Shown piece after piece: positions 43,130 to 59,100 of a stretch of 64,000 nucleotides of DNA. Source of the stretch: Vitrella brassicaformis CCMP3155 (Eukaryota; Protista; Chromerida); NCBI GenBank assembly GCA_001179505.1, contig CDMY01000318.1, forward strand, positions 1 through 64,000, given 5' to 3'. The translations under genes were made by a program, and so were the position numbers. Positions within the stretch are counted from its first letter, which is position 1. Every line of letters starts with the position of its first letter. The notes under the pieces were generated by a model. The model worked only from the letters and a program-made list of their open reading frames with translations. It was not told the origin of the DNA and did no database searches.

Positions 43130-44630
43130 CGGTCGCTTTTGTGTCTGTCTGCTGTCTGTCTGCCTCGCTAAGTGTCGCATCGATCGTCCCGCCTGCCAGC
43201 AGCCAAACACGTGCGGCAATGCAATCAACCCATGCGTGGAATCGATCCATCAAAGCACTGAGCCATCCATCCAGCCATGGAAACTACCGGACACACCCAT
43301 ACACTCACATGCATATAGGCAGGCACCACGGCCGGCCACAGCACGGAAACGCGCAAAAAAGGGGACGGCACGGAGGGTCTCTGTGTCTCTCTGTGTGTGT
43401 GGGTTGCGCTGTCTGTCTGTTTGTCTTGTCGGTTAGTCTGTCCGTCCACTCACACACATCCCAGGCAGCCCACACACACCACCCCTCCCAGCACTGACTA
43501 GCTATCCCATCACTGCCCCTGTACGTCCTCAAGCTCAGTCAGAGAGCGGCCAAAGGTCAGACAGAGCGGCAATGAGGCAAGTAACTAGTGCTGGCAGAGG
43601 TGGTGTGGTGTGGTGTAGTGTGCGGGTGTGTGTGTGTTTGTCGGTTCGGCTCACCGTCTGCCAAAAAACAAAACCAATGATTGATAACCGCCCATCCACG
43701 CAATACCATCATGGGTGCGGTTCGTTATGTGTGTGGGTGTGTGTGATCAAAACAGATGCAGAGCTGCGCGCGTGTGGCTGACGTGTGTGTATGAGACCGC
43801 TCTCTCTCTCCCAAAAAGCAAAATCACTGAGAGAGACAATACCATACAATACCATACGAACGGACAGGCAGACGAGGCCACACAGCACAACAACAAACAC
43901 TCATACTCACCACAGCCAGGCGGCCACAGCATTCTCACACATACAGACACTCCCCCCTTCAACACGTCCATCTGTGTATATGTGTGTGGTGTGTGGTGTG
44001 TGTTGGTGCTCTATTTGGCGTGGCCGTCGCGGTCGCGCTTCTTGCCCTTGCCCTTGGACAGCTGGGCGTAATTGATAGGTTCCTGGCCGTTCTCCCGCTT
44101 CTCCTGCAGACGGGGCGACATCCGCACCCCCTCCCCCCCGCCCCCGGCAGCCTGGTTGTTGCCCTGTGTGGGGCCACGGCGGACACGGCGGCGCTTGGAG
44201 CCACTGCCACTGCCACCACCGCTAGCAGCAGCGGCGGCGGCGGCGGCCGGTGCCGGTCCGTCGTCGATGTCCATCTTGTCATCGTCGATGTCCATGTGGT
44301 CGTCGGGGATGCCGTAGTTGACCTCGGGGAAGGGCGGGTTCGGCGGCATCACGGGATACCCTACGTGGGATGGATGGATGAATGGAGAGAGAGAGAGAGA
44401 GAGAGAGGGGAAGAGGTGATGGGTGGGTGGTGGGTATCTCTCTCTCTCTCTGTGTCTCTCTGTATCTTTGTGTGTGGGCAAGGGGGGCAGGAGGGAGGGG
44501 GTTTGTGTCTCCTCTCTCTACCATACGTATACGTACCTTCAGGATAGTTGGCCTGCAACTCGCCCAGGAAGTGGTGGTACCTGCACACACAAACGACAAG
44601 AAGCAAAGAAGAGACGTGTCCATTCGTCCA

Positions 44631-44665
<35 letters not shown>

Positions 44666-47433
44666 CTGTGTGTCTGTGTCTGTGTGTGTTCTCCTTGGCC
44701 CACTTACTTTTTTTTTGTCAACGATGTCGAAGAAGGGGTGGTACAACGCCTGCACAGCCGTGATGCGACGGTCCGGCTGATACGGCAACATACTGAACAT
44801 CCACACACACAACCGCATCCACATCACACACATGACCCTCACCCCCGCTCCCCGCTCCCCAGCCCACCGAGTGATCAGATCCACCAGCAGTGAGTTGCGA
44901 TCCACATCGGTGCGGCCATAGGGATGGTACCCGGCGGCCTGGGAGATGGAGTCGTCGCTGCGGCGCAGCAGCGCCGTGATGCCGTCGCGCGGGTCGCGCA
45001 CAAACTTGGGGAAACTCTGCACACACACAGACACACAGACACACAGAGAGAGAGAGAGATGAATGAGTTGTGTTGTGTTGTGTTGTGTGTGTGTGTGAGG
45101 GGTGTGAGGGGCGCACATTGAAGTGGTCGGCGTAGGTGAACGCTTCGCTGCGCGGCCAGATGGCATTGGTGGGCGTGCCCAGGGTGTTGAGCATCTTCAT
45201 CAACGTCTCAAACTGACAAACATGTGGCAACACAGACACAGACAGACACACACACGTAAACACGGACAGATGGGCACACAGGCAGACAGGTGTGTGTGTG
45301 TGTGTGGTGTTTGGTTGTGCAGCGCACCTCAGTGTGGCCGTTGAAGGCCGGCATGCCGCTCGTCAACTCTATGAAGATGCACCCAGTGGACCTGACGACG
45401 GCACGTGACCCACACACATACACACACCATAGTGCACAGGTCTCCTCCCTCTCCCTCTCCCTCTCCCTCTCTCTGAGTGTTGTGTCGTTCGTCGGCTGAC
45501 CAGATGTCCAGGGCATAGGTGTACTTGAAGTCGGCCGGTCCCATGAACAACTCGGGCGGGCGATACCTGCACACACACCAACACACACAGAGAGAGAGAG
45601 AGAGAGAGACACTGCTGAATGCACTGTGCGATGCTCTGTATGTCTGTGTGTGGGGGGGGGGGGCTAATGGGTTGTGTGCTCACCACTGAGTGGCCACCTC
45701 GTGCGACATCAACTTATTCGGAATCGTCACCGTGCGGGCCAAACCTGAGTGAGGCACACACACACACATACACACAAACACACAGAGAGGGAGAGAGAGC
45801 AAAGAGGCCGAGTGGATGGATGGATGTGTGGGCGGATCTCTTGTGTGCGGTTACTGACCGAAGTCGGCGATTTTGACGATCCAGTTGTTGGTCATGAGGA
45901 TGTTCTGCGGTTTCAGGTCACGGTGGATGACTGCACACACACACACACACAGAGATACGTCAGAACATGGCTGTGGATGGAAGAGGGGTTGGTATGATGT
46001 GCGCCATAGTGCCAGGATGGCGTACGTCCTTTGCAGTGCATGTAGGCGATGCCGTTGAGTATCTGGTACATCACGCGGGCCAACTGCTCCAGCGTCGGCA
46101 CTGCACACACACCACAACACACAAACACATAGAAACCAACACATGAGCCCCTGCCCCTCTCCCTCTCCCTGTCCCATGTGTGTGTTGTCGTTGTGTGTGT
46201 GTGCGTACCTGTGTTCTTGGGGAGTAGTTTGTTGGGGTTCCAGTAGGGGTAGTTGATCTTGTTCTCCTTGGCACAGATGGTACGGAGGCGTCCGAGGTCG
46301 CCGGCCTCGCACAGCTCGAAGATGAGGTACACGATGGTGGCCATGGGGTCGGAGGGGTCCATGTCCACCTTGTGGAGGGTGACGATGTTCATGTGGCCCC
46401 TCAACGCCATCAACGCATTCACCTGGCACACACACACACACACACGGAAAGATGGGAGGGAGATGGGGAAGATGGTTGCTTTGTTGTGGTGGTCGGCTTG
46501 TGTGTGGGATTGCCAACGTGTGGTAGGCCTCACCTCGCGCATCGTGGTGGATTCTATGCCCTCGCCCCCATTCCACTTCCTCATCTGCACACAACAACGC
46601 ACCATATCACACCGCACCAAATGAACGGCGGGTGAGAGAGACGTCACCATGAGTTCCCCCAGGATGATCAGTCAGTGGCGTGGTCACCTTCTTGATGGCC
46701 AGTCGTGTGCCCTCGGGGACCTCCGTCAACGTGCGATTCGTCACGGCAGCTACGCAGCCATAGACACCTGCACACCAACAGAATACGCAGACAGAGGGAA
46801 AGAATGAAAAGGAGGTAGTACGTAATGGAAAGCCTCAAGAATATGCCAATGCATCAGCCACGCGTCCACGCACCCACACAGAGCAAAATGCACCATCCAT
46901 CCGACGCATTCCATCCCGCCTCCCTCAGTGCATCACGTCCCACGCCGTGTCTCACGCTTCCCCGGCTTCTCTCGCCCTCCCACTCGTCCCGCCAGCTCAC
47001 CTGATCCGAGCATTCGAGAAAAGTGGAAGTTTTGGACCACATAGGGGTCGTGCTCCATGGTCTCGGCGACTTGCGCCATCCTCAACAACCCAACGACTCG
47101 CAGAAACCTTCTCTACGGCCTTTTAGGCGGCTGGGGGCGATACTGATCAGACGGAAGGCACTGTGCATGCGAGTGGCGGCGTCTCGATCTACACGTGTTG
47201 GCCAACGCGTGAGGTCGGCTGAATCAATGTTACATACATATTATGTGCTAGATGATTCATGGTATGCTGATCAGGCAGCCAAACCCATAGGCCGAAAGAT
47301 GGGTCCTGCGTTTACATCACCATGGCTCCTGCGACCGTTATGCGGCCGTGCCAACAGGGACGTCAACCAGGAGGCAGGCCTCTGCTGGCCACGCGCACGA
47401 CTCAAAGGGGTCTGCAAACCTCCGAAGACGCAA
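43130..47433 (-). repeat. Left arm of a large inverted repeat (partner about 55494-59100)
   Basis: Reverse-complement identity from GGGGTCTGCAAACC..GACGCAATT (47408-47433 versus 55494-55520) through the CDK-like gene and its downstream element. Confidence 0.92.
44011..47079 (-). CDS. CDK-like kinase copy A (ESTTMRE helix). Kinase domain intact, C-terminal tail frameshifted at an A9 run
   Basis: LGSG|VYG, LAIKK, EGIESTTMRE, HRDLKPQN, ADFG|LAR, SHEVATQW|YRPPE, DIWSTGCIF, LGTP, PDRRITAVQALYHPFF. Confidence 0.85.
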
Positions 47434-47543: not shown

Positions 47544-48616
47544 TCAGGCTGTGATTGCCACGGCATGCACCCTACACCGGACGTAGTCAGCCAACCACAC
47601 ATTCCCCTTCTCGTCACCAGTCAGCTCCCCCTCCCACCGGCCAAACACATCGTCTCTCACAGGCCGATACAGCCGCCCCTTTGCCCGCTCCTGGGCATCC
47701 TGCTGCATAGCCTCGCGCTCATCGCCGCTTATACCTTCGAAGAAAGAATCACCGAATGTCGTCAGCCTGCAGTGCACCACAGAGAACCAACATAGATGAC
47801 CACCGCGTCTCTGCCGGCCTGGCTGAGTCCACATCCATTCATCCGTACCATCCGGCGACGTCTGTGGGGAGGGGTGTCGGCCGGTCGATCAGCACACATG
47901 ACCGGACCTCAAAGCCATTCGCCTCCAGCAGGGCCGTGTACTCCTCCGCTGTGGGAAAGAACCACGGGTGCCGGCTGTCGAAGTCGGAGTGCCCGCGGGC
48001 AGCCAGCGCCTCCTTCACTGAACGACGGACAAGGCAGCATGGCATCGAGTCACCCCATCCCTCCCTCGCACTGGCTCACGTGCGTCGACGATGCACTGTA
48101 TGTTGCCGTAACCGCCAAACTCTGCGACGAACCGCCCGCCCTTCTTGAGCAGCCCTCGCACATTCCGCACCACCTTTGCCGGGTCGCTCTTCATCCAGTG
48201 CAAAGCCGCGTTGCTGAAGACGGCGTCGAACGCCCCCTCCCACTCAGGCATCTTCTCGTCCAGCCGGTGGCCGTCGATGACGTGCGCGTCAGTGATGCCA
48301 TTGTCGCGGGCTGCGTGGATCATCGGCTCGCTGGCATCGACTGCGGTGACGGAAGCGCCAGATGATTGGAGCTGCAGGGTCAGGACCCCATCGCCACACC
48401 CTGAGAGCGACAAACACATTGCAATGATTGAATCAGATGCGCTGCGTTCGGTCACTTTCTTTCGTCGCTCTTACCGAGATCTAAGATGCGCTCGCCTTTC
48501 TGAGGGCTGAGGTCATTCAGCAGAGGCGCGCCGAGCTTCGGGACGAACCCGGCGTGTGTCTGATATTGAAGGCTACTCCATTCATTCGAGCGCTCTCCAG
48601 TGAAGTCGCTGGGCAT
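47544..48616 (-). CDS. Class I SAM-dependent methyltransferase (Tam-like), copy 1
   Basis: WSSLQYQTHAGFVPKLG..GERILDLG|CGDG, VDAS, FDAVFSNAALHWM, GGRFVAEFGG, PWFFPT..Y..LLEANGF, ADYVRCRV. Four exons join in phase. Confidence 0.9.
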
Positions 48617-48903
48617 CAGGACGATGCAGAGTGGCTGCAGGTCTCCTTCCACTTCCTCTCTCCTTTCCCCTCTTCCTTTCTCCTCATCCGTTTCCCCTCT
48701 ACCTTTCTCCTCTTCGCTAGGACTGCGAGCTCAACTCCGAGGCGATCAGCAGGTTGGGCTGGCGAGAAGGGGATCATGAGCATGAAGACGGATCCGTCTC
48801 ATCACGATACATAGGTAGGTCAGGTGCCTTCCACACCAAATCCATCCTCGAACCATCACATGGCAAACAGCATCTTGTTGTGTCTGTGTGATCATGCAGA
48901 CAC

Positions 48904-49203
48904 NNNNNNNNNNNNNNNNNNNNNNNNNNNNNNNNNNNNNNNNNNNNNNNNNNNNNNNNNNNNNNNNNNNNNNNNNNNNNNNNNNNNNNNNNNNNNNNNN
49001 NNNNNNNNNNNNNNNNNNNNNNNNNNNNNNNNNNNNNNNNNNNNNNNNNNNNNNNNNNNNNNNNNNNNNNNNNNNNNNNNNNNNNNNNNNNNNNNNNNNN
49101 NNNNNNNNNNNNNNNNNNNNNNNNNNNNNNNNNNNNNNNNNNNNNNNNNNNNNNNNNNNNNNNNNNNNNNNNNNNNNNNNNNNNNNNNNNNNNNNNNNNN
49201 NNN
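48904..49203. other. Assembly gap (300 N)
   Basis: Run of N. Confidence 1.
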
Positions 49204-50121
49204 CCTGCTGCATAGCCTCGCGCTCATCGCCGCTTATACCTTCGAAGAAAGAATCACCGAACGTCGTCAGCCTGCAGTGCACCACAGAGAACCAACATAG
49301 ATGACCACCGCGTCTCTGCCGGCCTGGCTGCGTCCACATCCATTCATCCGTACCATCCGGCGACGTCTGTGGGGAGGGGTGTCGGCCGGTCGATCAGCAC
49401 ACATGACCGGACCTCAAAGCCATTCGCCTCCAGCAGGGCCGTGTACTCCTCGGCTGTGGGAAAGAACCACGGGTGCCGGCTGTCGAAGTCGGAGTGCCCG
49501 CGGGCAGCCAGCGCCTCCTTCACTGAACGACGAACAAGGCAGCATGGCATCGAGTCACCCCATCCCTCCCTCGCACTGGCTTACGTGCGTCGACGATGCA
49601 CTGTATGTTGGCGTGACCGCCAAACTCTGCGACGAACCGCCCGCCCTTCTTGAGCAGCCCTCGCACATTCCGCACCACCTTTGCCGGGTCGCTCTTCATC
49701 CAGTGCAAAGCCGCGTTGCTGAAGACGGCGTCGAACGCCCCCTCCCACTCAGGCATCTTCTCGTCCAGCCGGTGGCCGTCGATGACGTGCGCGTCAGTGA
49801 TGCCATTGTCGCGGGCTGCGTGGATCATCGGCTCGCTGGCATCGACTGCGGTGACGGAAGCGCCAGATGATTGAAGCTGCAGGGTCAGGACCCCATCGCC
49901 ACACCCTGAGAGCGACAAACACATTGCAATGATTGAATCAGATGCGCTGCGTTCGGTCACTTACTTTCGTCGCTCTTACCGAGATCTAAGATGCGCTCGC
50001 CTTTCTGAGGGCTGAGGTCCTTCAGCAGAGGCGCGCCGAGCCTCGGCACAAACCCGGCGTGTGTCTGATATTGAGAGCTACTCCATTCATTCGAGCGCTC
50101 TCCAGTGAAGTCGCTGGGCAT
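49204..50121 (-). CDS. SAM-dependent methyltransferase, tandem copy 2 (3' end runs into the gap)
   Basis: Near-identical to copy 1 at offset 1505 bp, with a few substitutions (GGYG/GGHA, PKLG/PRLG). Confidence 0.85.
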
Positions 50122-50277
50122 CAGGACGATGCAGAGCGATGCAGAGCGGTATACCTTGCTCTTCGAATGCCTTGAATTCGGGAAGCGTTCTCTTGTCAGC
50201 AACGGTTTCATGGAGCACCCTAGGCAGAGAAGCTCGCACAGAACCCCCGGGCGTGAAGACCTCGCGCGAGTGAAGCA

Positions 50278-53200
50278 ATGCAGCGCCAATGCAACGGTTC
50301 GCCAGATCCCGCTGCATTGACTCATGACCGGCCATCGCGGAGGTGGATCTGTCGGAGAAGAAGACTGTGGCGTGGGGCGTTGGTGGCTGCATCGGCAGCG
50401 CTGATATGGGGGAGGGCAGCACACGCCATCGACTACAGCAACGACCGGTGCAGGCTGACCAACGCATCGTTCCTTACCAATGACGAGCTGGTGAGTTGTG
50501 CTCTGCTTCATTGATTCATTCATTGATTCACTGACCTGTACTGTGTGTTGGTGGGGCTTTTTGCATGCTGCAGTTTTGGTACGATTCGAAGGAGGGGCGG
50601 GTTAAGCCCAGATGTGAGAGCTGCTTTCCTCTTGAAGTCACCGGTGAGCGATGGGGCGACGCACGAGGGGTGGGCTTCCGTTCTCTCATCCGTGTGTGTG
50701 TGTCTGCCTACATTGCAGCCACGCAGCTCTGCCTTACCGATTGCTTCTTTCCATACCAAAAGTGAGTGAGTGAGGCGGATGCCACAAATGAGCTAATGAC
50801 CATATCTGCCGGTGTTGTATGTGTGTGCGTCATTCCCTCAGTGGCACACACGACTTTGACAGTGTGGTTGACACGCTGTTCCGACTGCCCTGGGAGCACC
50901 TGGTGCAGCCGCCATTCGCCAACGTGACTCTGGCCAACCCAACATTCATCGTCGGTAAGTGAGAAGGACCGTCCTGCACACAAAGACTGTGTGTGATTCT
51001 GTTTGTGTGCAGGTTATGGCCCTCCCGGCAGCGGCAAGAGCCACATAGTAGAGTGGCTGTCGTATCTGGCGCCTGAGCTGCAGGTGACCCGGGACAACAC
51101 GATGGACGGCAACATCGACAGTGAGCAGTGTGTGGGGACCAGACCCACAGTGCCCGAGCAGACACGCACACCCCACATGTGTGTCTGCTCTCTCAGTGGT
51201 GTTTCAGTCGCTTCGTCAGTTCCGCGTCGAGTACGAGAGCATGAGCCAGGCGTGTGCCAACTGCACGTGCACCACAGACGAGCTCCTGGGCTTCAGACAG
51301 AGACTGTAAGCTACACTCGCTGTCCACACAGCTACCAGCCGGAGAATTGCTGTGTGTGCATGTGGCATCAATGTGGCATCAGGTACTCGGTGTACCGTTA
51401 TTTTTCTGACCAAGTCAACGACGAGTTGCTCTACCTCAGCACGCTCGAAAGGTTTCAGCCGGATTCCTTTCACATAACACGACAGGCACACATGCGCGAA
51501 GGACGCTGAGCACTTTTGTCTGCCTGCCTGCCCCTCTGGTGTCAGGTTGAACATATACTGGGAGACGACCGGCTGGGCCACGACATGGACTCTGCCGATT
51601 GTCGAGAAGATGAAGCGCTGGGGGTACAGAGTAGTTGTCGTATACCCACTGGTGAGGCAAGCAATCACATACCCACCCAAGAGGCACTCACTGACCTTGC
51701 CACCTGCTCGCTACGCCTGCAGGCTTTCACCCATCAGCTGCAGCAACGTGCTTCAAAGCGGGAGAAAGAGAAAGGTCACCACACTACACATACATTTCTC
51801 CGTCCATCGATCACATGCGTCGCTCTCTGCATTCGTGGACGCAGGTCAGATCCTGAACTATCCTGTGTCCATTGCGCGCAACGCCGAGCGGGCCACGAGC
51901 AACTTTCTGCTGCTCGGGGCGAGCCCGAACGACACCACGCTTGACGTGACCGGCCGGCGGGTGCTCAAGGGTGCAGACAGGCTGCTGCTGGTCGACAACA
52001 GCGGTAGGAAGACCAGCAGGCGGCCCCTCATATTCGACCGTCGGTGCGACACCGGCATTAGTGTGTCGGGAGAGGCCAAATTCGAATGCTTGTAAGATAC
52101 GGAAAGGGCAGATCTGACGGACCATTGCTCTCTGTGTGTGCCAGCACGACCTGCAATCCATCGTTCTGCGACCGGCTTGACGTGTGGCTCGGTGCTGGTG
52201 GCATTTCTGCGGCTGAAGAGGATGGTGGCATGAGCGGCATTGAAAAGCAGATGATTGAGTGCTGCACAGCCGACTGGCGGGCGAGGGAGTGCGCGAGGCG
52301 GCTTGCTGGCAAAGTGCTGGCAACATACAGTGACGAAGAGATCATACAGGCACGCCCATGCACGCTAGGCGAAAACATGCGCACGCATCTCATCTCTGCC
52401 ACGTGTGTTCTGTCAGCTGCGGTCGCTGGGTCGCATGCCATGGGACAGTCGGCTGGCGCGCGATGCCTTCCGGCTGATCCACGTGCCGTCCGACCAGCCC
52501 ATCAGCATTCCGCAGCGTTGCGTGGCCGAGGCGCACACCCTGCACGCCAACCAAGTGCTCCATGCCTACATCATCCAGCAGCTCAAGCAGACGCAACAAA
52601 CAACCGATCTTCAGAAACACGTCCAAGTGAGCCACGGGGGCGTCTGTACCAATGCACTTAAGCCGATGCGTCTTCTCTTGTGTTGTATTGTCGACTGGAC
52701 TGATGGGCTGACAGGAGGTGATCGACGCGCAGGAGCAGCTCGCCTTTGAGGGCTATGCGGCCAGGTGTGCACTGATGGCGAATGCGCACATGACGCTGCA
52801 AGAGACCTTCTCGATCGTCGAAGAGGTGAGTGACACACAAAAATGTCCCTTGTTCGTCTCGTCACATCCACTGGTCTCTCTCTCCCTCTCTCTCTGTGGT
52901 GGGCGCAGGTGCTGCATTTGGAGAAGGGCATGCAGTTCTACTGGACAAAGGACAGGCAACTGTGCGCCCTACGCCGCTACCCGTCCCCCTCCCTCCCCCC
53001 CCACCATTTCTCGGGACTCGGCCCTCCTCGTCCCCCGCCAAACAGCCGCCAGCATCATCACAACAACACGACAACAACAGCCGCCCTCGGTCACCCCCAG
53101 TTCTTCAAGTCGAATCTCTGCGTGTCTGTGATGCCCTTCAACACGCCATGTGGCCTGCCCGGCCTCCAGGACGGCCGCCACAAATGCTGGATGATCGCTC

Positions 53201-54227
53201 TACGGGAGCGTGTCAACGTGACGGCCAGCAGCCGGTTGGGCGGTGACGGTCATTACTCGATGGACGACCATCTTGAGAGGAGATGTCGTGAGGCTCTTGG
53301 AGTGCCGTCCTGCCAGCACTGGGAGTTCCGAGAGACCAGCAGCAGCAGCAGCAGCGGCAGCGGCAGCCGTCAGCAAATGCACACAGACGGGCGGCAAAGG
53401 GAGACCATCCGACGGCTCTATCTCAAAGGCAGCAACATGGTCTTCTCGATGGTATTCCCCACCCCCCGGAATGTATTCTGACACGCGTGAGCGCCTGTGT
53501 GTGCAGGTGGGCGGCAGCGTGACCAGTCGCTCGCCGGAGGACATTGCGCGTGAGGTGGCCACGGACAGGGGGCGGCCGTCGATCACGGAGGAGGTGCGGG
53601 ACGGAGTGCGCGTGGGCCGGAGGAAGCTGTCCATCCTGGCGCCTGAGTGGACTGGCGCCGACTCGTCGATGGACGACCCTCAGTCACTATCAGGTGAGTC
53701 AAGACACCGTCACGCCATTGCGGTGTGTGTGTGAGTGTTGTGGATTGTGTCGTCGACGAATGCAGACAGCCGCGCCCGCCTCTTGTCGCTCTACAGCAGC
53801 GACATCAACGAGTGCCGGTCAGCGCAGTGCCACGCACCCACCTGCCAATCTGTTGTCCTTTCCATCGGTGTACTTCTCTGTCTGTCTGTGTGTGTGTTGG
53901 TGCTGCGGTAGCGATGTATGGGATAAGCGTCGCGGCAAACCCACAGACGCGTTGTCGGATCCCTTCACTGCAGCATTTCGAGGCGAAATGGACAGAAAAG
54001 GTCAGCCACACAAGGACCAGTCAGATAAGCGCATCTCGGTCATCACTTGGCCTCCCATCACGGCTGCAGTTCCCCGCTCGCCACTGCACTCGGCAGACGT
54101 GAGCATGCGACTGGCTGCCGTGCATGAGCATCCGAGGTTGCCGGCGGCCATCGATGGTGCAGGGGAGGGTGCATGGGGCGTGGGGATGTGGAGGTCGCTT
54201 GCTGAGCAGCTCAGGCTATTCGCTTGA
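50278..54227 (+). CDS. Signal-peptide-bearing zeta-toxin-like P-loop kinase with a long C-terminal region
   Basis: LWRGALVAASAALIWGRAAHA|IDY leader. Phase-compatible exons give TFIVG|YGPPGSGKS, GNID|MVFQSL, R|LNIYWETTG, GYRVVVVY, QQRASKR..GQ, ADRLLLVDNSG. The 3' end is approximate. Confidence 0.7.
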
Positions 54228-54431
54228 GTGAGTGAATGGGAGGGATCGATGCTCTGTCTGTGTAAGGTTGTCAGTGCGTGCATGTGTGTGCACTGCAACA
54301 TGAGACATAGGACATATAGACAGACAGACACATTCATGCCCTGACGTCTGCGCTGTGCAGCTGCTGCGATGATCCGTCCATCCGTCCATCGGTCACATGT
54401 TCCATAGCCCTGTTGCCGCTCTGATCCATCC

Positions 54432-55493: not shown

Positions 55494-57154
55494 AATTGCG
55501 TCTGCAGGTTTGCAGACCCCTTTGAGTCGTGCGCGTGGCCAGCAGAGGCCTGCCTCCTGGTTGACGTCCCTGTTGGCACTGCCGCATAACGGTCGCAGGA
55601 GCCATGGCGATGCAAAGGCCATGGTGATGTAAACCAGAGGATTGTTTGGAGTTGTCGGCCTTTGCATCGCTCTCTGGGTTTGGCTGAATGATCAGCATAC
55701 CATGAATCATCTAGCACATAATATGTAACATTGATTCAGCCGACCTTACGCGTTGGCCAACACGTGTAGATCGAGACGCCCCCACTCGCATGCACAGTGC
55801 CTTCCGTCTGATCAGTATCGCCCCCAGCCGCCTAAAAGGCCGTAAAGAAGGTTTCTGCGAGTCGTTGGGTTGTTGAGGATGGCGCAGGCCGCAGAGACCA
55901 TGGAGCACGACCCCTATGTGGTCCAAAACTTCAACTTCTCTCGAATGCTGGGAGCAGGTGAGCTGGCGGGACGAGAGGGAGGGTGAGAGGAGCCGGGGAA
56001 GCGTGAGACACGGCGTGGGACGTGATGCACTGAGGGAGGCGGGATGGAATGTGTCGGATGGATGGTGCATTTTGCTCTGTGTGGGTGCGTGGACGCGTGG
56101 GTGGATGTATTGGCATATTCTTGAGGCTTTCCATTACGTACTACCTCCTTTTCATTCTTTCCCTCTGTCTGCTTATTCTGTTGGTGTGCAGGTGTCTATG
56201 GCTGCGTAGCTGCCGTGACGAATCGCACGTTGGCTGAGGTCCCCAAGGGCACACCGCTGGCCATCAAGAAGGTGACCACGCCACTGACTGATCATCCTGG
56301 GGGAACTCATGGTGACATCTCTCTCACCCGCCGTGCATTTGGTGCGGTGTGATATGGTGCGTTGTTGTGTGCAGATGAGGAAGTGGAACGGGGGCGAGGG
56401 CATGGAATCCACCACGATGCGCGAGGTGAGAGGCCTACCACACGTTGGCAATCCCACACACAACACGACGCACCACAACAAACTCATCTCCCCCACGTCC
56501 CCGCCATCTTTCCGTGTATGTGTGTGTGTGTGCCAGGTGAATGCGTCGATGGCGTTGAGGGGCCACATGAACATCGTCACCCTCCACAAGGTGGACATGG
56601 ACCCCTCCGACCCCATGGCCACCATCGTGTACCTCATCTTCGAGCTGTGCGAGGCCGGCGACCTCGGACGCCTCCGTACCATCTGTGCCAAGGAGAACAA
56701 AATCAACTTCCCCTACTGGAACCCCAACAAACTACTCCCCAAGAACACAGGTACCACACACACAGCGACAACACACACATGGGAGAGGGAGAGGGAGAGA
56801 GGCTCACGTGTTGGTTTGTATGTGTGTGTGTGTTGGTGTGTGTGCAGTGCCGACGCTGGAGCAGTTGGCCCGCGTGATGTTCCAGATACTCAACGGCATC
56901 GCCTACATGCACTGCAAAGGACGTACGCCATCCTGGCACTATGGCGCACATCATACCAACCCCTCTTCCATCCACAGCCATGTTCTGATGTATCTCTGTG
57001 TGTGTGTGTGTGTGTGTGTGCAGTCATCCACCGTGACCTGAAACCTCAGAGCATCCTCATGACCAACAACTGGATCGTCAAAATCGCCGACTTCGGTCAG
57101 TTACCGCACACAAGAGATCCGCCCACACATCCATCCATCCACTCGGCCTCTTTG

Positions 57155-57189
<35 letters not shown>

Positions 57190-59100
57190 TGTGTTCTTCA
57201 CTCAGGTTTGGCCCGCACGGTGACAATTCCGAATAAGTTGATGTCGCACAAGGTGGCCACTCAGTGGTGAGCACCCAACCCAATCCAACACCTACACCCT
57301 CACACACACACACACAGACATACATACAGAGCATCGCACAGTGCATTCAGCAGTGTCTCTCTCTCTCTCTGTGTTGGTGTGTGTGCAGGTACCGCCCCCC
57401 CGAGTTGTTCATGGGACCGTCGCATCACGGCTGTGCAGGCGTTGTACCACCCCTTCTTCGACATCGTTAACAAGAAAAAGTAAGTGGGCCAAGGAGAACA
57501 CACACAGACACAGACACACACACACACAGAGAGAGTGAGAGAGAGAGATGGACGAATGGACACGTCTCTTCTTTGCTTCTTGTCGTTTGTGTGTGCAGGT
57601 ACCACCACTTCCTGGGCGAGTTGCAGGCCAACTATCCTGAAGGTACGTATACGTTTGGTAGAGGAGACACAGACCCCCTTCCCCCTGCCCCCCTTGCCCA
57701 CACACAAAGATACAGAGAGACACAGAGAGAGAGAGAGAGATACCCGCCACCCACCCATCACCTCTTCCCCTCTCTCTCTCTCTCTCTGTGTCTCCATCCA
57801 TCCATCAATCCGTGTATCCATGCAGGGTATCCCGTGATGCCGCCGAAGCCGCCCTTCCCCGAGGTCAACTACGGCCTCCCCGACGACCACATGGACATCG
57901 ACGATGACAAGATGGACATCGACGACGGACCGGCACCGGCCGCCGCCGCCGCTGCTGCTGCTAGCGGTGGTGGCAGTGGCAGTGGCTCCAAGCGCCGCCG
58001 TGTCCGCCGTGGCCCCACACAGGGCAACAACCAGGCTGCCGGGGGCGGGGGGGAGGGGGTGCGGATGTCGCCCCGTCTGCAGGAGAAGCGGGAGAACGGC
58101 CAGGGACCTATCAATTACGCCCAGCTGTCCAAGGGCAAGGGCAAGAAGCGCGACGGCGACGGCCACGCCAAATAGAGCACCAACACACACCACACACCAC
58201 ACATACACAGATGGACGTGCTGAAGGGGGAGTGTGTGTGTGTGGGAATGCTGTGGCCGCCTGGCTGTTTGGTGACTCACTGGTGAGTATGAGTGTTTGTT
58301 GTGGTGCTGTGGTCGTCCGCCTGTCCGGTCGTATTGTATTGTGTTATATTGTGTTGTGTTGTATTGTATTGTCTCTCTCAGTGATTTTGCTTTTTGGGAG
58401 AGAGAGAGAGAGAGGTCTCATACACACAGGTCAGCCACACGCACGCAGCTCTGCATCTGTTTTGATACCATCACACACACCCACACATAACGAAACGCAC
58501 CCAGGTATTGCGTGGATGGGTGGCTATCAATCTGGTTTTGTTTTTTGGCAGACGGTGAGCCGAACCGACAAACACACACACACCCGCACACTACACCACA
58601 CCACACCACCTCTGCCAGCACCAGTTCGTTGCCCAATGCCGCGGTCTCTGACCTTTGGCCGCTCTTTGACTGAGCTTGAGGACAGACAGGAGCAGTGATG
58701 GGATAAGTAGCTAGTGCTGGGAGGGGGAGGGGTGGTGTGTGTGGCCTGCCTGGGATGTGTGTGAGTGGACGGACAGACTAACCGACAAGACAGTCAGACA
58801 GACAGACAGCGCATCCCACACACACAGAGAAACACAGAGACCCCTCCGTGCCGTCCCCTTTTTTGCGCGTCTCCGTGCTGTGGCCGGCCGTGGTGCCTTT
58901 CTGTATGCATGCGAGTGTTTGGGCGTGTCCGGTAGTTTCCATGGCTGGCTGGCTCAGTGCTTTGATGGATCGATTCGATGCATGGGTTGATTGCGTTGCC
59001 GTACGTGTGTTTAATTTGGCTGCTGGCGGGCGTGGACGATCGATGCGACACTTAGCGAGGCAGACAGACACGGAAGCGACCGACGGATCGACTGAATCAG
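55494..59100 (+). repeat. Right arm of the large inverted repeat
   Basis: Reverse complement of 43130-47433, minus a 767-bp internal deletion. Confidence 0.92.
55879..58175 (+). pseudogene. CDK-like kinase copy B, pseudogene (767-bp deletion with frameshift, catalytic-loop Asn to Ser)
   Basis: ..FMGP jumps to SHHGCAGVVPPLLRHR* at GGACCG 57414-57419. The catalytic loop reads HRDLKPQS (AGC at 57050-57052). Confidence 0.9.

Follow-up and report, generated by a model that had tools for sequence, protein, structure and literature searches.

A zeta-toxin-fold kinase gene with a putative targeting leader in the chromerid alga Vitrella brassicaformis

The gene and its transcripts

The window, meaning the whole 64,000-nucleotide stretch of DNA that was analyzed, carries one expressed Vitrella brassicaformis gene at positions 50278-54227 of the plus strand. 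Its 18 exons encode a protein of 894 amino acids, from an ATG at position 50278 to a TGA stop codon that ends at 54227. All 17 introns are backed by spliced transcript contigs, based on splice joints and on the piece arithmetic of a 1,945-nucleotide contig (X7 record 14), and splicing is complete, with transcription seen in three runs. One intron (52350-52416) is of the GC-AG type, and its joint 52346|52414, which has a 3-nucleotide ambiguity, equals 52349|52417. In an exon-by-exon comparison, 18 of 18 exon peptides map in order to the database protein P0001 (894 aa), with 11 split-codon residues falling between them. P0001 is a public V. brassicaformis protein that is identical to the product of this gene, and it carries the UniRef name 'Zeta toxin domain-containing'. 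An earlier reading made from the sequence alone had described the locus as one multi-exon gene with this strand and these limits. The spliced contigs and the P0001 mapping agree with that description, although its estimate of about 15 exons must be raised to 18.

The first exon (50278-50490, aa 1-71) runs from the start codon through the leader into the beginning of the conserved region, and its joint with exon 2 (50490|50574) is present in X7 and X8. A four-cysteine lead-in is divided between exon 2 (50574-50643, aa 72-95), which contributes C85 and C88, and exon 3 (50719-50761, aa 95-109), which contributes C99 and C103. Exon 4 (50842-50954, aa 109-147) encodes the helices preceding the P-loop strand. 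It is followed by exon 5 (51013-51120, aa 147-183), which carries the Walker A motif GPPGSGKS (51018-51041, including K155) and the sequence NID, whose D182 is encoded at 51117-51119. A CANCTC insert is present in exon 6 (51197-51305, aa 183-219), and exon 7 (51383-51451, aa 219-242) encodes YRYFSDQVNDELL and includes D232. Exon 8 (51546-51651, aa 242-277) encodes NIYWETTG, with E248 at 51562-51564, and GYRVVVVYP. Exon 9 (51723-51774, aa 278-295), whose length fits the arithmetic of X7 record 14, supplies the lid-like residues R286 (51747-51749) and R290 (51759-51761). The single-copy exon 10 (51845-52091, aa 295-377) carries LVDNSG (51988-52005) with N346, and exon 11 (52145-52349, aa 377-445) completes the kinase region, with cysteine clusters, begins an orphan C-terminal region and borders the GC-AG intron on its 3′ side.

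The C-terminal region continues through exon 12 (52417-52626, aa 446-515), exon 13 (52715-52825, aa 516-552; 111 nucleotides by record arithmetic), exon 14 (52909-53451, aa 553-733), exon 15 (53507-53693, aa 734-796), exon 16 (53766-53817, aa 796-813), exon 17 (53912-54000, aa 813-843) and exon 18 (54070-54227, aa 843-894 plus the TGA stop codon). A coding (AGC)n microsatellite in exon 14 (about 53330-53375) is the only place where the transcript contigs break, and the reading frame continues through this repeat. Besides the transcript joints and the mapping to P0001, further evidence comes from the structural model for exon 4 and from alignments for exon 7. The protein ends in ...LRLFA, and neither of the ER-retention sequences KDEL and HDEL is present at this C-terminus.

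The least secure part of the gene model is its 5′ end. Sequencing depth over 50244-50350 comes from run X7 only and was deduced from bin arithmetic, and thus transcript coverage of 50278-50350 is inferred from one run. The ATG at 50278 is the sole methionine codon before Walker A, and an in-frame TGA (50254-50256) lies 24 nucleotides upstream of it. A segment that includes the 3′ half of exon 1 and most of intron 1 (50351-50563, plus strand) is duplicated on genome contig C459, where the copy is 97% identical over 150 scored bases and is fused to another exon. This copy accounts for the 49-letter loose ends that precede 50351 in transcript contigs, and for variants at 50384, 50407 and 50423. 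An alternative 5′ exon built from the 49 loose letters was therefore rejected. Transcribed in the divergent direction, the upstream neighbor reads like a SAM-dependent methyltransferase in translation, which is the only basis for this assignment.

The kinase module and its relatives

The protein consists of a leader of about 60 residues, a conserved module from aa 64 to about aa 400, and about 490 C-terminal residues. The conserved module comprises the four-cysteine lead-in and, after it, a P-loop kinase with the zeta-toxin/PezT fold. Direct comparisons with the Vitrella sequence fall short of family thresholds. Residues 120-400 of P0001 score 15.5 bits (E 0.012) against Pfam Zeta_toxin (PF06414), under the gathering cut-off of 22.3, and P0001 scores 18.1 bits against AAA_33, which is slightly above its own Zeta_toxin score and under the cut-off of 27. 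Exon-by-exon Pfam scans gave generic P-loop matches on exon 5 only and none on the C-terminal exons. A six-frame PF06414 scan of the genome missed the locus and gave only P-loop-level matches elsewhere, and NCBIfam gave no meaningful match. A word search with the stop-free read-through 51478-52092 had no match, and one with full-length P0001 returned only P0001 itself. Because phmmer of the domain against PDB sequences yielded noise only, a family profile was needed.

In every relative scored, Zeta_toxin is the top family and AAA_33 is second. Zeta_toxin scores above the 22.3-bit cut-off were obtained for P0004 (38.7 bits), P0007 (56.9 bits) and the L023 and L024 proteins (48.6 and 43.2 bits), and precomputed PF06414 matches are on record for P0008-P0013. 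With the profile of family alignment A2, zeta toxin 1gvn_B is matched along 135 positions (E 0.0028), and this match includes Walker A, D67 and the EGTG loop. When an AlphaFold model of moderate quality (mean pLDDT about 65, core about 80) was used as the Foldseek query, ranks 1-8 were all zeta/PezT structures (3q8x, 1gvn and 2p5t; E 8e-6 to 4.5e-4). VIA-align Z scores are 16.6, 16.5 and 15.8 for zeta/PezT, 12.1-12.4 for AvrRxo1, at most 11.9 for polynucleotide kinases and at most 12.4 for others. The best zeta alignment (Z 16.6) spans 209 residues, versus about 160 for polynucleotide kinases. These profile and model comparisons support the prediction that the kinase domain has a zeta-toxin fold with its catalytic residues intact. 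An AAA_33/polynucleotide-kinase-like assignment was rejected as the best match, given its sub-threshold score for P0001, its second place in the relatives, and its lower Z scores.

All motifs quoted in the sequence-only reading are present (AHA|IDY at aa 48-53, GPPGSGKS at 149-156, NID at 180-182, NIYWETTG at 244-251, GYRVVVVY at 268-275 and LVDNSG at 343-348), and the zeta-toxin order it assigned to them is borne out by the profile and structure matches. Its suggestion of an undescribed system does not hold at the level of the domain, since UniRef already names a zeta domain in this protein and eukaryotic zeta-domain kinases (NADKc) have been published.

In alignments A2 and A3, the family shows no variation at K155, E248, T250, G251, R286, R290 or N346, and very little at D182. 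Column K56 of A2 is invariant and D83 is nearly invariant. WETTG is invariant in A3, and in the profile alignment its counterpart is zeta IEGTG (with E116 and T118). R286 and R290 are invariant in both alignments. The family profile aligns D182 of NID with D67 of 1gvn_B, which is the catalytic base of zeta (PMC3062530), making D182 the candidate catalytic base here. In zeta, R120 contacts the UDP phosphates and T128 contacts the uracil (PMC3062530). The HMM alignment, which involves no ligand-bound structure, pairs R120 with W252 and T128 with I260 at a position that is variable in the family, whereas other UDP-GlcNAc contacts appear to be kept (T118 with T250, E100 with D232). Given the replacement of these two UDP contacts, the substrate is probably not UDP-GlcNAc.

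The resemblance to zeta/PezT (PDB 1gvn, 3q8x and 2p5t; PF06414) includes the N-terminal helices of the fold, spans about 210 residues (Z 15.8-16.6), and encompasses Walker A, the Asp after the second strand (D67 and D182), the E-x-T-G loop and the GY strand in the same order. However, identity is only 12-14%, P0001 falls below the Pfam cut-off, and R120 and T128 are replaced. The Vitrella gene is also eukaryotic and intron-rich, adds a leader, the four-cysteine lead-in and about 490 C-terminal residues, and shows no recognized antitoxin partner.

The closest sequence kin of the kinase module are giant-virus proteins (Harvfovirus A0A3G5A9B8, Moumouvirus M1PLX6, Indivirus and Tupanvirus) and other members of a 'WETTG' subfamily, for which metagenome and genome collections were scanned with the narrower alignment A3; P0004, P0007-P0012, L017, L018 and L023 were compared. 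These proteins are 23-30% identical to the Vitrella module and share YGPPGSGK, VDxD, YNIxWETTG, GYRxxxVYP, an R-x3-R lid and YDNxG. Unlike the Vitrella protein, they stand alone at 220-350 aa with neither leader nor long tail, and two carry an N-terminal zf-MYND domain in place of the leader. The sources of the relatives are giant-virus contigs (two relatives lie on GVMAG contigs), a Legionellaceae MAG (one relative), and AT-rich marine contigs or microbes. The gene for P0009 adjoins genes for a ribonucleotide reductase large subunit and RNA_pol_N, and the best BFVD matches are zeta-domain proteins from viruses of the Mimiviridae type. No antitoxin-like gene was seen beside relatives in the neighborhoods viewed. 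A scan of the genome for the antitoxin family PF08998 gave no match, and the control genomes gave none either. We know of no established function for any of these relatives.

The leader and the C-terminal region

The leader (50278-50427, plus strand, aa 1-50) has an Arg-rich segment (aa 18-32), the core GALVAASAALIWG (aa 33-45, 50374-50412) and RAAHA before IDY. The core is an uninterrupted run of 13 uncharged residues and is the sole hydrophobic stretch in the protein, with A-H-A occupying positions -3 to -1 relative to I51. Net charge over aa 1-50 is +8, acidic residues are absent from aa 18 to 51, and R46 is located two residues before A48. The Arg-rich n-region, core and A-H-A resemble signal-peptide architecture, but the n-region extends over 32 residues and Kyte-Doolittle means for 19-residue windows peak at 1.32. 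Overall, the leader exceeds the typical length of a signal peptide, the hydrophobicity of its Ala-rich core is only moderate, and aa 15-35, where the amphipathic moment reaches 0.6, partly resemble a mitochondrial presequence.

Homology with the closest relative begins at aa 64, and that relative itself begins about six residues before the shared region. Thus, as judged from these alignments, the leader and the C-terminal region of about 490 residues are Vitrella-specific additions. The hydrophobic leader noticed in the sequence-only reading is found in the Vitrella protein only. The mature part contains eight N-glycosylation sequons, a weak excess over the 3.7 ± 1.7 of shuffled sequences (P about 0.02), and all the sequons listed previously (NAS, NGT, NVT, NCT and NDT) are there. 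It also contains 24 of the 26 cysteines, with the other two in the leader. The lead-in motif C-x2-C-F-P-x-E-V ... C-x3-C-F-F-P is common to the Vitrella protein and the leaderless marine relative L025:2510-2950. With the same four cysteines in that relative, the lead-in does not count as evidence for disulfides in a lumen, and metal binding is suggested instead.

The leader features and the weak sequon excess make ER entry plausible. We place close to even chances on a cleavable signal peptide that would be cut after AHA (aa 50) to yield a soluble lumenal or exported protein. Delivery to the mitochondrion or to an organelle surface seems unlikely, though it deserves consideration, and a leader with no targeting role takes up the rest of the probability. 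Plastid proteins of chromerids carry a bipartite signal that often has Phe at +1 (PMC6668581). Such a signal was rejected here, as residue +1 is Ile and the stretch from the putative cleavage site to the domain (aa 64) comprises only about 12 residues and leans acidic.

Residues 400-894 have no family match and no detectable relative in Pfam, NCBIfam or among structure neighbors, as the sequence-only reading had anticipated for a long C-terminal region of this kind. The ESM Atlas neighbors of this region all have TM <0.25, and its AlphaFold single-sequence model has a pLDDT of 36. Such low scores indicate that no confident fold is predicted, and do not thereby establish either disorder or newness.

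Function and origin

We consider it reasonably likely that this nuclear gene joins a zeta-fold kinase module to a Vitrella leader and C-terminal extension, and that its product is a resident enzyme rather than the toxin of a toxin-antitoxin pair. We infer from conserved positions that the domain is an active ATP-dependent kinase, in which K155 and S156 would hold ATP and Mg, D182 would act as the base on the substrate hydroxyl, E248 and T250 would lie in the Walker-B/substrate loop, and R286 and R290 would form a lid. By analogy with the characterized members of the fold, which act on UDP-GlcNAc or NAD, the substrate is probably a small molecule that contains a nucleotide. To our knowledge, kinases of this fold have only three known activities, namely UDP-GlcNAc 3′-kinase (toxins), NAD 3′-kinase (AvrRxo1) and NAD 2′-kinase (plant NADKc).

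The sequence-only reading had proposed that the protein phosphorylates UDP-GlcNAc, or another nucleotide sugar or glycan, and is either sequestered in the ER/Golgi lumen or sent out of the cell as an antibacterial effector against peptidoglycan synthesis. In its favor, zeta/PezT are a better match than any other kinase in fold and in the catalytic Asp, Glu and Thr, and a signal-peptide-like leader, a mild excess of sequons and many cysteines were found as described above. However, two zeta residues that contact UDP are replaced at a position that varies in the family, and the leaderless relatives from giant viruses and the Legionellaceae MAG are solo genes with no antitoxin seen beside them. 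This subfamily is thus evidently tolerated in the cytosol. The protein also has no ER-retention signal, and an exported effector would require ATP and entry into the bacterial cytoplasm, for which no translocation module is detectable. We therefore assign this proposal a low probability. A role as UDP-GlcNAc kinase, toxin or antibacterial effector is unsupported, and nothing marks the Vitrella protein as a toxin.

An arrangement like that of the CaM/Ca2+-dependent NAD+ kinase NADKc (At1g04280), in which the N-terminal segment would serve as a mitochondrial presequence or anchor the protein in an organelle outer membrane, strikes us as similarly improbable. Plant NADKc-1 has a hydrophobic helix (aa 24-45), a region of unknown function and then a zeta-toxin domain, resides on mitochondria and makes NADP+ (10.1101/521658). 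Its authors report this organization only from plants and some green algae, and it exemplifies recruitment of the zeta fold to a housekeeping or signaling role (10.1101/521658). The likeness noted to the Vitrella protein is one of architecture: both are eukaryotic proteins with an N-terminal hydrophobic segment followed by a zeta-type kinase, but in NADKc the kinase domain is C-terminal and is preceded by a calmodulin site, and the protein is anchored to mitochondria. The Arg-rich, amphipathic Vitrella leader, which lacks acidic residues over aa 18-51 and has R46 near A48, fits an organellar destination, but the uninterrupted uncharged core followed by A-H-A is more typical of a signal peptide. 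For a membrane anchor, this same core lacks the necessary length and hydrophobicity. AvrRxo1, which phosphorylates NAD (PMC5491322), is the next structural match after zeta/PezT, although zeta/PezT are clearly better. This Xanthomonas type III effector (an NAD 3′-kinase; PDB 4z8t) likewise has a zeta-like fold and uses a dinucleotide rather than UDP-GlcNAc, but it is an injected bacterial protein with an antitoxin-like partner.

Very unlikely is a cytosolic enzyme or decaying acquired gene with a non-targeting leader or wrong start and a disordered filler at its C-terminus: this would suit a leader absent from all relatives, a C-terminal region with neither relatives nor confident structure, the finding of no orthologue in other eukaryotes, and indirect transcript support for 50278-50350, but no stop interrupts the 894 codons across the 18 exons, every catalytic column is intact, the gene is transcribed in three runs and fully spliced, and no other methionine is available between the upstream in-frame stop and Walker A.

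Returning to the resident enzyme that we favor, a genuine ER signal peptide would make this protein the first small-molecule kinase with the zeta-toxin (P-loop) fold in the endomembrane lumen or outside the cell, a tentative prospect that we regard as possible but doubtful. Its catalytic module would then come from a gene pool common to giant viruses and intracellular bacteria. The lumenal kinases of which we are aware all have the protein-kinase fold, and it would be new to biology for a nucleotide-type P-loop kinase to act in the secretory pathway. If the leader does not provide ER entry, the gene would represent another 'toxin' fold recruited to ordinary metabolism, as with NADKc. Either way, the gene provides no evidence for a toxin-antitoxin system in a eukaryote.

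Database searches with P0001 found no orthologue in any other eukaryote. In a maximum-likelihood tree of 17 relatives, in which branches are long and most forks have <95% support, no donor can be named and the Vitrella protein groups with P0003 and L020. The module most likely passed horizontally, in one direction or another, among protists, the viruses that infect them and the bacteria living inside their cells, and the Vitrella lineage would later have gained the introns, the targeting leader and the C-terminal extension. The finding delimits a rare, uncharacterized WETTG branch from giant viruses, a Legionella-type bacterium and one chromerid alga, whose common thread is life inside protists or infection of them. 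Since the Vitrella copy alone in this branch has a leader of the targeting type and a large additional region, it offers a handle on the substrate and compartment of the branch.

Gene structure and transcripts

The zeta-toxin-fold kinase gene (window 50278-54227, plus strand) has 18 exons, running from an ATG at 50278 to a TGA ending at 54227, with a coding length of 2,685 nt or 894 codons. The exon model was built by reading three frames with GT-AG boundaries, and the first database searches used the exons singly or the stop-free read-through 51478-52092, in which exons 8 and 10 are in frame. A word search with this read-through gave no match, and an exhaustive HMMER search with it recovered the 894-aa database protein P0001. 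P0001 contains all 18 exon peptides in the same order, and the sole residues that separate them are 11 from split codons. The protein is titled 'unnamed protein product [Vitrella brassicaformis CCMP3155]', and its UniRef name is 'Zeta toxin domain-containing', so the zeta domain label was already public.

Contigs from four public sequencing runs were placed on window 50100-54400. Three of the runs (X1, X7 and X8) are spliced transcript assemblies, and the contigs of the fourth (X6) are unspliced and DNA-like. The spliced contigs show plus-strand joints at 50490/50574, 50643/50719, 50761/50842, 50954/51013, 51120/51197 and 51305/51383 on the side of exons 1-6, at 51451/51546, 51651/51723, 52091/52145, 52349/52417 and 52626/52715 in the middle of the gene, and at 53451/53507, 53693/53766, 53817/53912 and 54000/54070 in its 3' part. 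The joint 52349/52417 is listed as 52346/52414 with a 3-nt ambiguity, and a shift of +3 yields a GC-AG intron. This intron 11 (52350-52416; CAG|GCACGC ... TGTCAG|) is supported by spliced contigs from all three runs. Two more joints, 51774/51845 and 52825/52909, were derived from a 1,945-nt contig of run X7 (record 14) that spans exon 1 to position 53329 within exon 14. Exactly 225 and 109 nt lie between neighboring pieces of this contig, which correspond to exons 7-9 and to exon 13 after subtraction of 2-nt overlaps, and thus the two unprinted joints follow.

Further contigs extend from exon 14 past the stop codon. The sole break between contigs is a coding (AGC)n microsatellite in exon 14 (window 53330-53375), which encodes a Ser/Gly run and was skipped in contig placement. 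Every transcript contig stops there, and therefore the complete mRNA is not covered by any one contig. Because contigs cover both sides and this coding repeat is the only interruption, the locus is one gene. The sequence-only reading had proposed a single phase-compatible gene of about 15 exons. The transcript joints and the mapping of P0001 bear out the single gene, and the exon count is revised to 18. A division into two genes is thus rejected. The 17 introns indicate a resident nuclear gene, and exon 10 is single-copy in the Vitrella genome assembly (72.7 Mb in 1,064 contigs).

At the 5' end, ATG 50278 is the sole in-frame Met codon ahead of the Walker A motif, and an in-frame TGA lies 24 nt upstream. 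Contigs of X1, X7 and X8 carry 49 unmatched letters before position 50351 that are absent from the 64-kb window. An alternative first exon was considered for these letters and ruled out, as they are found on genome contig C459 directly ahead of a copy of window 50351-50563. This copy of roughly 210 bp (G000:C459 ~69690-69901, minus strand; L010, L014) is 97% identical to the window over the 150 bases scored, with the alignment continuing to ~50563. It contains the 3' half of exon 1, from codon 25 onward and including the hydrophobic leader core, together with most of intron 1, and is joined after an AG to a different exon, with no stop in the same reading frame along the entire exon. This transcribed copy may represent recent exon shuffling of a leader-like segment. 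The loose ends, along with variants at 50384, 50407 and 50423, therefore belong to this transcribed partial duplicate and not to the kinase gene. By bin arithmetic, depth over 50244-50387 in X1 and X8 is indicated as wholly duplicate-derived, and X7 has extra depth over 50244-50350 with the methyltransferase side (50100-50243) nearly empty. The X7 depth fits, indirectly, the kinase gene's own 5' end.

Fold and relatives of the kinase

Single-exon family scans returned P-loop matches only. The kinase portion of the protein (P0001:120-400) scores 15.5 bits against Zeta_toxin (cut-off 22.3) and 18.1 bits against AAA_33 (cut-off 27), and phmmer of the domain against PDB sequences gave only noise. 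Read directly from the P0001 sequence, the likeness to zeta toxins thus appears weak, and the evidence obtained through relatives, profile and structure is stronger and more consistent.

Exhaustive searching, together with a word search seeded with P0007, revealed a small family (P0003, P0004 and P0007-P0013) that we call the WETTG subfamily after a shared motif. Pattern scans add members from two IMG/VR giant-virus MAGs (L017, L018), metagenomes (L019-L023) and a Legionellaceae MAG (L024). Four members were scored against Zeta_toxin and AAA_33 (38.7/35.9, 56.9/50.3, 48.6/37.3 and 43.2/32.2 bits), and each of them passes the cut-off for Zeta_toxin and scores higher with it than with AAA_33. 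Hence, the earlier assignment to Zeta_toxin (PF06414) over AAA_33 holds for the tested relatives, whereas P0001 itself passes neither model.

The family alignment (A2) includes the shared motifs F-x-I-x-YGPPGSGK, VDxD, LY...R..(A/S)D.ISD and YNIxWETTG...WT, followed by GYRxxxVYP, an R-x3-R pair, TGQ and YDN.G. Its invariant columns include K155, E248, T250, G251, R286, R290 and N346, with D182 almost so. When the PDB was searched with an A2 profile, zeta toxin 1gvn_B matched across 135 positions (E 0.0028), and the remaining matches were P-loop-only. In this alignment GSGK is paired, the zeta sequence V-I-D-N-D-T-F is placed with VDxD (D67 = D182), and G-Y-N-L-V-I-E-G-T-G is paired with YNIxWETTG.

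An AlphaFold2 model built on A2 has a mean pLDDT of 65.5, with the core near 80. Foldseek ranks zeta (3q8x, 1gvn) and PezT (2p5t) structures 1-8 (E 8e-6 to 4.5e-4), followed by PFK-2 kinase, 2rhm and polynucleotide kinases with E near 1e-3. VIA-align gives Z scores of 16.6 and 16.5 for zeta and 15.8 for PezT over ~210 residues that include the N-terminal helices, compared with 12.1-12.4 for AvrRxo1 and at most 11.9 over ~160 residues for polynucleotide kinases. Both methods therefore favor zeta/PezT over another P-loop family. By its fold the domain is one of the zeta/PezT/AvrRxo1/NADKc P-loop kinases, and it probably works like them. The observation made from sequence is confirmed, and the interpretation then placed on it is partly supported.

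The long C-terminal region (aa ~400-894) belongs to no recognized family, as first suggested. It has no Pfam or NCBIfam match, all of its ESM Atlas neighbors have TM < 0.25 with an Atlas model pLDDT of 0.44, and an AlphaFold single-sequence model reaches a pLDDT of only 36. Failure to model this region is not evidence of novelty.

The closest relative occurs on AT-rich marine contigs from TARA and two other assemblies (L025-L027; also L020). There the gene (L025 2510-3675) is divided between neighboring ORFs of 147 aa and 221 aa, the latter being P0003, that are ~56 nt apart with an identical split in three independent assemblies. A short intron, a programmed frameshift and a fixed break could each account for this split. 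Neighboring genes code for a Branch-type glycosyltransferase, hemerythrin and a PEP-utilising enzyme. The 147-aa ORF is 32% identical to Vitrella aa 64-198, with C-x2-C-F-P-x-E-V ... C-x3-C-F-F-P present in both, and P0003 is 37% identical to aa 218-360. The marine relative has ~6 residues ahead of the shared part and stops shortly beyond the kinase, and thus aa 1-63 and aa ~400-894 of the Vitrella protein are lineage-specific additions. A database word search with P0001 found no full-length orthologue.

Another member, P0009, is encoded on a metagenome contig amid closely spaced genes that include those for a ribonucleotide reductase large subunit and RNA_pol_N. Such a setting is typical of giant viruses. 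The best structural matches in BFVD are 'Zeta toxin domain' proteins of Harvfovirus, Moumouvirus, Indivirus, Tupanvirus and Terrestrivirus. The Legionellaceae member (L024 2839-3882; 347 aa) lies beside ordinary bacterial genes, among them an NlpC/P60-SH3b gene and one for an alpha/beta hydrolase. Protist hosts or their viruses may share this gene with the bacterium, and it possibly codes for an effector. In P0011 and P0012 (L016 151-1134), an N-terminal zf-MYND zinc finger is fused to the WETTG-type kinase, suggesting that protein-protein recruitment might take the place of a targeting leader. Horizontal exchange is suggested by the spread of the family over viruses of protists, an intracellular bacterium and a single alveolate. 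In a 17-sequence tree, Vitrella groups with P0003 and L020, and because branches are long and most forks are unsupported, the tree names no donor.

Substrate and destination

In the zeta toxin, the proposed base is Asp67, which is in contact with the 3'-OH of UDP-GlcNAc, and Thr118 contacts the beta-phosphate, Arg120 the UDP phosphates, Thr128 uracil and Glu100 the ribose 2'-OH (PMC3062530). The profile alignment equates D67 with D182, T118 with T250 and E100 with D232, all conserved or conservatively replaced, and so the catalytic machinery looks intact. It also places W252 at R120, where family members differ, and I260 at T128, and UDP-specific contacts would accordingly not be retained in this HMM alignment. 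The proposal that the enzyme phosphorylates UDP-GlcNAc as the toxins do is disfavored by these two replacements, and its substrate is probably a different one. AvrRxo1 (PMC5491322) and NADKc (10.1101/521658), which have the same fold, use NAD, and by analogy the substrate is probably a nucleotide-containing small molecule. No partner gene was noted beside the Vitrella gene, the related genes stand alone, and the contacts to UDP-GlcNAc are only partly kept. On these features the Vitrella protein is probably not the toxin of a toxin-antitoxin pair, and the toxin role considered earlier is unsupported.

The leader (aa 1-50) has a net charge of +8, with no acidic residues over aa 18-51 and an Arg-rich stretch at aa 18-32 whose amphipathic moment reaches 0.6. 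Its uncharged, uninterrupted core, GALVAASAALIWG (aa 33-45), is the sole hydrophobic segment of the protein and is followed by RAAHA and then IDY. The positive n-region, the length of the h-region and A at -3 and -1 are signal-peptide-like, whereas the 32-residue n-region and Ala-rich core are not. On these features, ER entry would have close to an even chance. The mature part has 8 sequons against 3.7 +/- 1.7 in shuffled sequences (P ~0.02), two of them overlapping, and 24 Cys. The marine relative, which has no leader, keeps the four-Cys lead-in, and leaderless viral relatives keep the C-terminal CxC...CxC cluster, which points to metal sites rather than disulfides. The sequon excess and Cys content are weak support for a lumenal life, and the protein carries no C-terminal KDEL/HDEL. 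Overall, a secretory-pathway zeta-fold kinase, as originally envisioned, is possible but doubtful. Should the leader turn out to be a signal peptide, the Vitrella protein would be the first zeta-fold kinase to be lumenal or exported.

The Arg-rich amphipathic part resembles a mitochondrial presequence, and a mitochondrial or organelle-surface destination seems rather unlikely; what likelihood is left would fall to no targeting. In chromerid plastid proteins, Phe tends to follow the cleavage site (PMC6668581). Here the +1 residue is Ile and only ~12 acidic-leaning residues precede the conserved domain, making a plastid bipartite signal unlikely. With a best 19-residue Kyte-Doolittle mean of 1.32, the core is both too weakly hydrophobic and too short to be a typical membrane anchor.

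Among published eukaryotic proteins, plant NADKc is the nearest analogue. Its hydrophobic helix at the N-terminus (aa 24-45) is followed by a stretch of unknown function and a zeta-type kinase, and the enzyme resides on mitochondria and produces NADP+ (10.1101/521658). Repurposing of a toxin-family enzyme in a eukaryote is thus an established theme. Given this precedent and the UniRef label, the locus does not qualify, at the level of its domain, as the undescribed system for which the sequence-only reading made it a candidate. What is new is the rare WETTG subfamily spanning giant viruses, a Legionellaceae MAG and a chromerid, the leader present only in Vitrella, and the large orphan C-terminal extension of the Vitrella protein.

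Genomic neighborhood

The plus-strand kinase gene is flanked by long inverted-repeat arms at roughly 43983-47236 and 55722-58203, confirming its predicted location within the spacer beside methyltransferase-like genes. Four collinear arm pairs, 95-98% complementary, surround the 8.5-kb spacer that holds these genes and the kinase gene. An adjoining tandem duplication (window 47699-49503) has a 1,505-bp period and 99% identity over a 300-nt repeat unit, and includes an N run (assembly gap) at ~48900-49230. The translation of the duplicated minus-strand gene reads like a SAM-dependent methyltransferase. The first exon of its proximal copy begins ~150 bp upstream of the kinase gene ATG on the opposite strand, and thus the two genes share a short divergent promoter region. 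The inverted-repeat arms themselves carry protein-kinase-like ORFs.
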